This document shows positions 10,825 through 27,664 of a stretch of DNA of 32,000 nucleotides, piece after piece. The position numbers and the translations under genes were made by a program. The stretch's first letter is position 1; the number at the start of each line of letters is the position of its first letter. A model generated the notes under the pieces. The model ran no database searches, had not been told where the DNA came from, and saw only the letters and a program-made list of their open reading frames with translations. Source of the DNA: Wallemia ichthyophaga EXF-994 (taxonomy: Eukaryota; Fungi; Basidiomycota). Where the stretch lies: NCBI RefSeq assembly GCF_000400465.1, contig NW_008806280.1, forward strand, positions 30,001 to 62,000. The letters are read 5' to 3'.

Positions 10825-11591
10825 ATGAGCGCATCAGTGTTATCGCAGCAGGCGCGTGATGAGCGTGATTTACGTGTTCCATCCAGCACACCGCCTCCAC
10901 TGCCAGAAGAAGAAGAGCCTCCATTGCCAGACGAGGAGGAGCCCGTGTTGGAACAATCAGAGAGCGCAGGGAGCTCAGAAAATCCCCAGCAATCCCACCA
11001 ACCCCATCCTCAAATCTTACACGGAAAGAACGGCTGGTCAGCCATCTACGAGCCAAATTCATCGCAATACTACTACTACAATCAATCTACGGGCGCAACG
11101 ACCTGGCAAAATCCATTCTCTAATATAAATCCACAACATGACTCAATCAATACAAACAAACGCGAATTCTATCATGAAGAAGATGACGCGATTGATCCCG
11201 AGTTGGCCCATTTGATGCCCTCATCCAGTACTGATCCTGCTGGGTTTGTCCAGGCAAAGTTCAACGCTCGCACCGGTCAGTTCAACAGCAAAAGTTGGCA
11301 GACACCCGAGCACGTCTCCGCAATCAACAAGTCCAGGCGGCAACAAGGTGTGTAGACTATATATCAAATCTACCACCCCTTACCCACCTCACAGCTGCTT
11401 TCTTTGATCTCGATGCTTTCGAGAGGCAGAGAAACGACGACCATATGGCGAAAAAGGCTAAAATTGATGAGTTGGGTAAGGACAGTGTCAAGCCTAAGCT
11501 CTCAAAGGATCAAGTCAAGATGTATAAGGAACAGAAAGCAGCCAAGAGGTACAAAACCAAAACCGACTGGCTTGTGAATGACGATAAGTAG
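10825..11591 (+). CDS. Fungal WW-domain protein of unknown function; intron 11348..11394
   Basis: Repeated PPLP motifs, a WW domain (GWSAIYEPNSSQYYYYNQSTGATTWQNP), AKFNARTGQF and a Lys-rich C-terminus. Splicing joins ORFs 10825 and 11295 (RRQQ|AAFFDLDAFE). Confidence 0.75.
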
Positions 11592-25351: not shown

Positions 25352-25594
25352 TTAAACATTGTTCTGTCGCCCCAGCTGGTCACTGTCGAGGCGTGGGTCC
25401 GCGGCGATATCGTGCGGGTGTTTGTGGTATTTCTTTCCATCACGACCGAGTGCGTCTTCCATGCGCGCGTCCGTGTGGCGATGTCCCGCTGCTTGTCCCT
25501 TGTTTGCGAGGTCATGTTCGAGGGAGTGCATCGCATCGCGAGGTGCCCTGGTCTCATTCAGTGGTGGTCCCTGCTTGATGAGGTCGTCGGCCAT
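25352..25594 (-). CDS. Small hydrophilic hypothetical protein (about 80 aa)
   Basis: ATG in ACAACATGG context and an Asp/His/Arg-rich frame in otherwise unassigned space. No recognisable domain. The start could instead be a further-upstream in-frame ATG. Confidence 0.45.
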   Translation of the reverse strand: MADDLIKQGPPLNETRAPRDAMHSLEHDLANKGQAAGHRHTDARMEDALGRDGKKYHKHPHDIAADPRLDSDQLGRQNNV

Positions 25595-25991: not shown

Positions 25992-27664
25992 TTACGCATG
26001 ACGCTTTTCACCAGGCTCCTCAAATGCCTGCTCCCTTCTAAACTCATCCTCTTCTTGTTCGCGTGTGATCTGCTTGCATACCCTAGATCTAGCTCTTAGC
26101 CAGCCACCAAAAACCAACAAAGTGAATGGGATGGAAGACAGTGCGAGCGCAATGAAACCGATTGTCGATGACGCCCATGGGAAAGACAGGTTATCGAACA
26201 TAGCGGTTGCGAAGAAAGGAAAAGTTGCACCAAGAAGATTTCTCAGTAATGCTTGTGCAGCTTGTGCAGATGAACTGTATTGCTCGTATGCGTCACCAAT
26301 GTAGGTGTAGACACCAGCGTAAATAGGGAAAATACCAAAGTTGACACCAATAACTGCAATCATCGATACCCATGGAGTGATCCATGGACGCGCTGTCCAC
26401 CCGAACATGAACTCGAACGCTCCGAATAACACAGCTCCGAGAGCTGCTTGGTATAGACGTGCTTCAGGTGGTGCAATATGCGTGACTGGATCTTTGCTTC
26501 TTTTGTAAAGTGCATTTTGACCAAAGTTGAGAAGCCATGCAAGGAATGCACCGATGAATCCACAAATCAACACGGTCCCGGACTCGCCTGTTGATCAGGT
26601 TAGACAGGGAATTTAAGGTAATCCAAACTAAAAAACCCACCCTGGTTGAAACCGTAGTTGACTTCGTATACATGTGGGGTAGCACCTGTGAAAAGGAAAA
26701 CCATGCCCCAGGCGAAACCAACCCACAGCGCCAAAGCCATAACGATTGGCTCGGTCAAAAGGTAAACAATAGGTCTAGCCAACGACTTTGACATTGCTCC
26801 TTTGAATGAATGTGCGGCATCTGTTTTGATCTTGAGGTCTGTACCATATGTCTTGTTGTAGTTGCGAACTTTCTTGTCGAGAATGACGTCATGGCGTGTT
26901 TCATCGAGGAGGAACATACACAAGAGGAAGACTGCGCCGTTCATCGCCATCTGCATCCAGTAAATGTTAGGCCAGTCGGTTTTGAATGCCAACCAGTTGC
27001 AACACAACGGACCGAGCGCGTTTGCAGTAAAGACGATGAGCGTGAATGTAGCCATGGCAACACCACGACCGTGATCACGATGGAAGAGATCAGTGATAAT
27101 ACCTGCGACGTGAGGACCCTCAATACTTGCAGCCAAACCCTGGAAAAGACGTGTGATGGATAGGGACTCGATGTTAGGAGCGAGCGCTTGCGGAAGGAAG
27201 AGGATAACGATGAGAAGAAGCAGACCGACAATCATTGGCCGTCTACCGTAGGACTCGGATAGAGGAGCGAGGAAAAGAGGTCCGAGACCCAAAGCAGCAT
27301 TGTAGGTGAAACTGGATGTGAGGAAGACGCTGCCGCTGATACCGAACTCTGCTGTGACACCTGCTTTGGCTGCTGAGTTACCTATAGAGAATGTGAGTAT
27401 GTAAAATAACCTCAACATAGCACATGGACCCACCTGAGAAAAATTTAGCTTTGAAGAATAAGCATGAGTGAAGCGTTACCCACCTGTTGCATTGAAGGCA
27501 GAAACAAAGTTGAGAAGAAGTGCCATGATATAACTCTTGGACTTCTTAGGCATTGACCATTCCCAAGGGAGCTCCTGCCCCACAAGCTCCAAGTCGATAG
27601 GCGGAGGATCGTCGTGGTTCTTGACTTCAGACATTTGGTCCTTCTTGAACTTGTCGAAAAGCAT
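25992..27664 (-). CDS. MFS drug:H+ antiporter (DHA1 family); compound intron 27382..27483 and an intron at about 26586..26636
   Basis: P.EWSMPKK, GPLFLAPLSESYGRRP, ITRLFQGLAASI..GIITDLF, ALGPL, DWPNIYW, ETRHDVILDKK, PIVYLLTEPIV, PPEARL, WTARPW and ALLRNLLGATFPFF are characteristic fungal DHA1 motifs. Confidence 0.9.

Follow-up and report, generated by a model that had tools for sequence, protein, structure and literature searches.

How is a 102-nucleotide (nt) interruption removed from a coding region when it can be read either as one intron or as two complete introns with no exon between them? The question is raised by a gene for an MFS transporter in a 32,000-nt stretch of DNA from the salt-loving fungus Wallemia ichthyophaga EXF-994 (contig NW_008806280.1; hereafter, the window). 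All coordinates refer to the whole window, and the transporter gene and both intron units lie on its minus strand. The reading favoured here, with a probability of about 0.6, is that the interruption consists of two autonomous spliceosomal introns of normal size, 50 and 52 nt, that would abut at a zero-length exon.

The anatomy of the interruption can be read directly. The minus strand runs caacag/GTGGGTAACG..AAGCTAAATTTTTCTCAG/GTGGGTCCATG..ATACTCACATTCTCTATAG/gtaact (slashes mark splice boundaries), and the full read of 27495-27370 is tcaatgcaacag/GTGGGTAACGCTTCACTCATGCTTATTCTTCAAAGCTAAATTTTTCTCAG/GTGGGTCCATGTGCTATGTTGAGGTTATTTTACATACTCACATTCTCTATAG/gtaactcagcag. A preliminary description of this locus had placed two complete intron units, without an exon between them, at 27483-27434 (50 nt) and 27433-27382 (52 nt). 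These coordinates are exact, and each unit has a donor, a branch motif and a YAG acceptor of its own. The 3' splice site of the first unit directly abuts the second unit's 5' splice site (GCTAAATTTTTCTCAG/GTGGGT, 27449-27428), which is the layout of a ratchet point. Exon 1 ends in ACAG in all lineages, and its joining to the donor of unit 2 would, as read from the sequence only, produce CAG/GTGGGT and regenerate a 5' splice site.

The gene encodes a 505-amino-acid (aa) DHA1-like MFS transporter. The family had been named correctly before, as the product matches the Pfam MFS_1 profile (PF07690, E = 1.9e-29, residues 49-431), and its homologues carry the names MFS or multidrug transporter. The exon 1 product, like the whole protein over its length, is 100% identical to annotated W. 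ichthyophaga proteins, and the next relatives in the search table are from W. hederae (78%) and W. mellicola (76%).

On translation, removal of both units gives ..SAFNATGNSAAKAGVTAEFG.., with the junction FNAT/GNSAAK. Removal of unit 1 alone gives ..FNATGGSMCYVEVILHTHILYR followed by a stop, in agreement with what had been reported, and removal of unit 2 alone, or of neither, leads to a stop after GG. Retention of either unit thus brings a stop within 0-21 codons. Such stops would also suit a different role, in which the internal sites serve mainly to make unproductive transcripts and a retained unit tunes transporter expression through its early stop; in W. ichthyophaga, alternative splicing is reported to consist mainly of intron retention. 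However, retention of any intron has the same effect, for which abutting sites are unnecessary, and this role is considered improbable.

A second solution is also in frame. It places a real 15-nt exon (27448-27434, encoding AKFFS) between a 35-nt intron (27483-27449) and the 52-nt intron, giving ACAG/CTAAATTTTTCTCAG/GTAAC and the product FNAT-AKFFS-GNS. The earlier statement that no micro-exon of normal length restores the frame therefore holds only on the premise that an intron cannot be as short as 35 nt, as the 15-nt exon keeps the frame.

Of the two in-frame products, the one lacking both units has the correct junction, as judged in W. ichthyophaga by homology and not by RNA, because a gap-free alignment of homologues, an intronless relative and the complementary DNA (cDNA) of a sister lineage all agree on it. 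In an alignment of 13 sequences, the 12 others have no gap at FNAT/GNS, and an insert is seen only in the W. hederae model P0002, where it is intron sequence read as coding. The intronless relative (L005, 66% identical, from an ENA metagenome) reads AAT GCC ACA GGG AAT AGT straight through, and the sequences from Rhodotorula toruloides and Dioszegia are likewise contiguous at this point. A Logan contig of 2,011 nt (L009, run SRR23314750) carries an uninterrupted 510-aa open reading frame (ORF), and its exons are 99.3-100% identical to same-species genomic contigs (L010-L012) from a species closely related to W. mellicola (protein identity 97%). Four or five GT-AG units present in the genomic contigs are missing from L009, the count depending on how a second stretch considered below is divided, and L009 is therefore derived from spliced RNA. 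Its sequence across the interruption site is ACAG/GTAAC. The final junction FNAT/GNS proposed in the preliminary description is thereby upheld. A check of orthologues for a micro-exon lost at this site, suggested at the same time, ruled that possibility out, given the ungapped alignment and the read-through in L005, the sole insert (P0002) being intron sequence.

The 15-nt exon is in frame in W. ichthyophaga and in its sister lineage L017, and it is part of the deposited EXF-994 reference model (J056_004138, 510 aa), whose protein P0127 carries FNATAKFFSGNS. However, the EXF-994 annotation was made ab initio with GeneMark-ES only, and none of the 12 other sequences in the alignment has anything equivalent to the five added residues. 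The equivalent segment contains an in-frame stop in W. hederae, would need an intron of 19-22 nt in the W. mellicola lineage, and is missing from cDNA L009. The proposed exon coincides exactly with a conserved branch site, T-run and acceptor, and the 35-nt intron that it demands is below every other unit seen (43-62 nt). A real exon at this position is hence very improbable.

No ancestral intron at this exact site was found in the other basidiomycetes compared (R. toruloides, Dioszegia and Meredithblackwellia). The Meredithblackwellia eburnea orthologue has a 67-nt phase-1 intron (L007:797-863) 12 nt upstream of the Wallemia position and in the same phase, which could be a coincidence or an old position that has shifted.

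Conservation of the internal junction was assessed with six aligned Wallemia sequences from four to five lineages, which represent every Wallemia lineage fetched (Table 1). The invariant columns comprise the outer GT..GT, AAATTT of the first branch region, the internal AG/GT..GT, CT of the second branch site, the outer AG and a few scattered singletons. The GT..GT of the unit-1 donor, the AAATTT of its branch region and its AG are present in six of six sequences, and an internal branch site of its own, CTAAA, is kept alongside AG/GTnnGT in every fetched lineage. Orthologues of unit 2 are 43-52 nt long with the branch motif CTCAC, CTTAA or CTAAC. Only two changes were found in the internal donor, at +3 and +4, positions that vary in the outer donor also, and the change in the internal acceptor is C to T, so that the pyrimidine before AG is kept. 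In all, 27 of about 102 columns are invariant and these include all six that had been specified beforehand, for which a p of about 2e-4 was obtained by our own arithmetic.

Table 1. Features of the transporter gene in the window and the equivalent interruption in other Wallemia lineages
Feature	Position	Strand	Size	Signals and remarks
Exon 1, MFS transporter gene	27484..27664	-		ATG 27664-27662; ends ..AAT GCA ACA G, phase 1; from translation
Unit 1, predicted intron	27434..27483	-	50 nt	Donor GTGGGT 27483-27478; branch motif GCTAAA 27449-27444; T-run; acceptor CAG 27436-27434
Internal junction CAG/GTGGGT, putative zero-length exon or ratchet point	27428..27436	-		Acceptor abuts donor, between 27434 and 27433
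Unit 2, predicted intron	27382..27433	-	52 nt	Donor GTGGGT 27433-27428; branch motif ACTCAC 27398-27393; acceptor TAG 27384-27382
Exon 2	26641..27381	-		First codons GT AAC TCA, (G)ly Asn Ser; from translation
Ordinary intron of the same gene, comparator for size and signals	26588..26640	-	53 nt	GTGGGT..TCTAAC..AACAG
Exon 3 to stop	25992..26587	-		Stop TAA 25994-25992; product 505 aa in total, Pfam MFS_1
CTAAATTTTTCTCAG, micro-exon (AKFFS) of the EXF-994 annotation	27434..27448	-	15 nt	Read here as unit-1 branch site, pyrimidine tract and acceptor, not as an exon
W. mellicola, same site			49+47 nt	GTGAGT..CCCCAG/GTGAGT..ACTAG
W. mellicola relative, same site			49+48 nt	GTAAGT..CCCCAG/GTGAGT..ACCAG
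W. hederae, same site			49+43 nt	GTGAGT..TTACAG/GTGGGT..AGTAG
L017, sister lineage of W. ichthyophaga (89.5% protein identity; Logan SRR25399871), same site			49+47 nt	GTGAGT..TCTTAG/GTGGGT..TGAAG
Second W. ichthyophaga-like lineage, same site			50+52 nt	Internal donor GTTGGT

Between the signals, little has been kept. Among three deep lineages the interiors of the units are no more similar than shuffled sequence, and the proteins of these lineages are only 71-81% identical; neutral drift should therefore have erased a site that had arisen by chance. The two close sequences of the W. mellicola group differ at 12 positions, all of them outside a 31-nt block that begins at branch site 1 and reaches 9 nt into donor 2. 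This pattern is that expected of selection for splice-site function and not for a particular sequence.

The frequency of such a site by chance was estimated by shuffling the interior of the 92-102-nt stretches and scoring an internal YAG/GTNNGT with an upstream CTNAH, both halves being at least 40 nt long. The full internal site appeared in 3.5-7.2e-4 of trials, and in 0.7-1.5e-4 with stricter motifs. With 11,786 annotated introns in W. ichthyophaga (PMC3849046), a few chance cases per genome are possible at such a rate, and one species alone would be unconvincing. Conservation across the genus, with the juxtaposed sites present in six of six sequences whose interiors are at random-level identity, lifts the internal site above chance. 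The observation of two abutting introns is confirmed as real and non-random.

The sizes of the units were compared with those of other Wallemia introns. Units at this site are all 43-52 nt long, and introns and units verified by cDNA in the W. mellicola relative measure 44-52 nt. Candidate introns in the window that bridge ORFs and have GTGNGT donors are predicted to be 44-62 nt long. The convincing short introns on both strands of the window nearly all have donors of this type (GTGGGT, GTGAGT, GTGTGT or GTGCGT) and have lengths within these limits. In published data, introns average 61-68 nt in W. ichthyophaga and 55 nt in W. sebi. Read as a single intron, the interruption is about twice the usual size in every lineage; its total of 92-102 nt is long only relative to the Wallemia mode of about 50 nt, and in this it does not resemble ratchet points that subdivide an unusually long intron.

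The preliminary description had left open whether the two units are separated by a zero-length exon, with ratchet splicing, or form a spliceosomal twin intron (stwintron) of the [D4,5] type. In the latter, an inner intron starting at 27479 (GTAACG..CAG) would split the outer donor as GTGG/GT, and an outer intron of 56 nt would be removed second, by way of the intermediate GTGGGTGGGTCC (27480^27433). This is formally possible in W. ichthyophaga, where GTGG is repeated, and stwintrons of this type exist in Lipomyces. However, the inner donor reads GTAACG, GTTCAT, GTTCAT, GTGGGG and GTAGAG in the five lineage versions, none of which fits GTNNGT (0/5), and is not conserved, whereas the outermost hexamer and the abutting donors are always canonical GTNNGT. 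Furthermore, all six splice motifs are intact in the primary transcript, and the interruption that defines a stwintron is missing. The [D4,5] route is therefore ruled out on conservation and retains next to no probability, and of the two earlier possibilities it is the zero-length exon, with its conserved AG/GT and a branch site of its own, that is likely.

Fungal spliceosomes pair splice sites across the intron (intron definition). Under the favoured reading, unit 1 would be defined by the first donor, branch site GCTAAA and the internal CAG, and unit 2 by the internal GTGGGT, branch site ACTCAC and TAG. Removal of unit 1 would join exon 1 (..ACAG) to the G of the second donor, recreating CAG/GTGGGT, which would then be used to remove unit 2. 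By sequence the reverse order would be equally possible, early removal of unit 2 placing the unit-1 acceptor in front of exon 2, though transcription order would favour removal of unit 1 first. Both orders would end in ACA G/GT AAC (Thr-Gly-Asn). Actual use of the internal sites, and the order of their use, we infer from the sequences; the retention of the internal AG/GT and of its own branch site in all sampled lineages favours real use.

Further support comes from a second site in the same gene, at the Ala-Leu codons of ..AAQALLRN.., where the number of introns is 0 in W. ichthyophaga, 1 in W. hederae and 3 in the W. mellicola group. The W. ichthyophaga equivalent lies at about 26263 on the minus strand and is intronless. 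W. hederae has one 47-nt intron (L002:4403-4449), which corresponds to the first of the three in the W. mellicola group. In W. mellicola and its relative, the arrangement is caagc/GTGAGT..(44-45 nt)..CACAG/AT/GTAAGT..(52-53 nt)..TTCAG/GTAAGT..(47 nt)..TTAAG/tgttaag (L010:3372-3516 and L001:4415-4561), and cDNA L009 reads caagc-AT-tgttaag. In an exhaustive search for GT-AG solutions reconciling L009 with genomic contig L010, every solution required a 2-nt exon, AT, after a 44-nt intron. The 99 nt that follow AT can be removed in one piece or as 52+47 nt, split at CAG/GTAAGT, which would be a second zero-length exon. As judged by the cDNA, the spliceosome of Wallemia makes use of acceptor and donor sites separated by just 2 nt, and it therefore pairs sites across units of about 50 nt whatever the length of the exon between them.

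A further short exon is predicted by homology in L017 (1816-1920), where the full-length ORF (..WVGFAWGCVFL..) requires an exon of 6 nt, CATGGG (1864-1869), flanked by a 48-nt and a 51-nt intron; W. ichthyophaga is intronless at that site. Across Wallemia lineages the exons of this gene thus form a series of 6, 2 and 0 nt, of which the zero-length exon appears to be the natural end point. Ultra-short exons are known from other fungi, with 13 of one nt, 57 of two nt and 27 of three nt in the basidiomycete Coprinopsis cinerea (PMC12230235) and one of 1 nt in CYP621A of Fusarium (PMC12940212). As at the Wallemia site, short introns are there separated by almost nothing. However, exons of 1-3 nt are traceable in the mRNA and provable from cDNA, whereas an exon of 0 nt leaves no trace.

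A search of the window and of the flanks of orthologous loci for other tandem arrays left just this site after ORF-flank filters. One candidate on the plus strand of the window (11276-11394) was rejected, as it looks like coding sequence before an ordinary 47-nt intron. A metagenome scan with a degenerate exon-1 pattern gave no matches. No residual similarity was detected between the two units of any lineage, or between the pairs B/C or X/Y (z -1.0 to 1.1), and tandem duplication of one intron was accordingly set aside as the source of the pair, an ancient duplication being possible.

Several observations weigh against two separately spliced introns, and most of these would suit an ordinary intron of 102 nt that is excised at once (donor 27483, branch near 27394, acceptor 27382), with the internal AG/GT unused or a rare side path. 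A one-step excision of the 102 nt leaves the same mature mRNA. A single intron is what most public annotations show, among them the 2019 strain annotations and that of W. mellicola. No intermediate turned up when a protein database was searched for the ORF of the form spliced at unit 1 only, which returned just two genomic ORFs, one of which brought lineage L017 to light. For W. ichthyophaga itself the case is built on DNA sequence. Longer single introns must exist in the genome, given that the mean length is above the mode. Finally, one W. ichthyophaga-like lineage (Logan assemblies L013-L016:1486-1491; SRR25393947 and others) has the weaker-looking GTTGGT instead of GTGGGT as its internal donor, a G-to-T change at +3 that is one of only two differences in 102 nt, the other being G instead of A at nt 8 of unit 1. 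GTTGGT may be a tolerated weaker donor, and the objection is tempered by a candidate intron with a GTTAGT donor elsewhere in the window (2447-2398, minus strand).

A single intron, however, leaves unexplained why AG/GTnnGT, a well-spaced CTAAA and a T-run have survived where the interiors are randomised, and why a second stretch of about 99 nt in the same gene has the same central CAG/GTAAGT. One-step removal is hence regarded as unlikely, and two introns meeting at a zero-length exon remain the preferred interpretation.

The preliminary description had held that either a zero-nt exon or a donor-4,5 type would be notable in a basidiomycete. This claim cannot be sustained in that form, as stwintrons of the [D4,5] type are known in Lipomyces and zero-nt exons have precedents in Cryptococcus neoformans and Schizosaccharomyces pombe. 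Zero-length-exon splicing is thus already known in fungi, including a basidiomycete. In C. neoformans, recursive splicing at a zero-nucleotide exon was found in BOT1 (CNAG_07884) by spliceosome profiling (Burke et al., bioRxiv 10.1101/224170). There, junctions, branches and 3' ends demonstrated the subdivision of a 375-nt intron (210+165 nt), whereas the Wallemia interruption spans 92-102 nt, would comprise two units of minimal size and is supported by conservation. In S. pombe, a zero-length exon lies in a 336-nt intron of SPNCRNA.445 (Chen et al., bioRxiv 10.1101/226894). This case resembles the Wallemia site in the immediate juxtaposition of 3' and 5' splice sites and in their conservation among sister species, but it differs in being from an ascomycete, in a non-coding host transcript for small nucleolar RNA, in an intron three times longer, and in having experimental evidence.

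In animals, recursive splicing at zero-nucleotide exons is established at the ratchet points of Drosophila (Duff et al., bioRxiv 10.1101/006163) and of vertebrates (Sibley et al. 2015, as cited in the literature). These share with the Wallemia site a juxtaposed polypyrimidine-AG/GTRAGT and a 5' splice site regenerated after the first step. They break up introns that are tens of kilobases long and operate under exon definition, whereas the Wallemia pieces are about 50 nt long and would be recognised by intron definition.

The stwintrons of other fungi, which include type [D1,2] and the [D4,5], [D6,7] and [D7,8] types 'sensu lato' of Lipomyces (PMC7138796, PMC5587772, PMC5639578), also represent complex intervening sequences removed by consecutive standard splicing reactions, and one of the host genes studied likewise encodes a DHA1-type MFS transporter. 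The stwintron in that DHA1 gene of Pezizomycotina lies at WGPLSELY, and the Wallemia site is elsewhere. Stwintrons are defined by an inner intron that breaks up a splice motif of the outer intron; at the Wallemia locus all motifs are whole, so that by definition it is not a stwintron, and removal could begin with either unit. What is new is the scale together with the conservation, namely two introns of minimal size that together span about 100 nt within a coding region, found genus-wide and accompanied by 2- and 6-nt micro-exons in the same gene.

Public annotations of this one gene contain four kinds of model error (P0127, P0002, P0003, P0001). The EXF-994 reference model has the spurious 15-nt exon and so an inserted AKFFS, and the W. 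hederae model has 16 inserted residues derived from intron sequence. Three residues (LLR) are missing from a W. mellicola model because the 2-nt exon was missed. In several W. ichthyophaga strain models (682 aa), the transporter is fused to a downstream ORF. The part fused on is a separate small ORF on the minus strand (25352-25594, 80 aa, MADDLIKQGPPLNETRAP..GRQNNV), 400 nt downstream of the transporter stop, and its product is hydrophilic and rich in His and Asp. Gene finders trained on a narrow distribution of intron lengths cope poorly with tandem introns.

Should the internal sites be used, splicing in steps at zero-length exons would not be confined to very long introns. It would also take place in compact fungal genomes on a scale of 100 nt, hidden there from mature-mRNA data and annotated as one intron. 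A broader proposal, offered tentatively and considered less likely than not, is that the series of fungal micro-exons may run on, unseen, into zero-length exons, that intervening sequences of more than about 90 nt in Wallemia may as a rule consist of autonomous introns of about 50 nt strung together, and that new introns may arise in tandem beside existing ones. Chains of this kind would imply a practical size limit on intron definition, and gain in tandem would suggest that introns are acquired locally, for example by reverse splicing or by the repair of breaks at active splice junctions. The series of 0, 1 and 3 introns at the Ala-Leu site provides a compact system in which the gain of adjacent introns could be studied.

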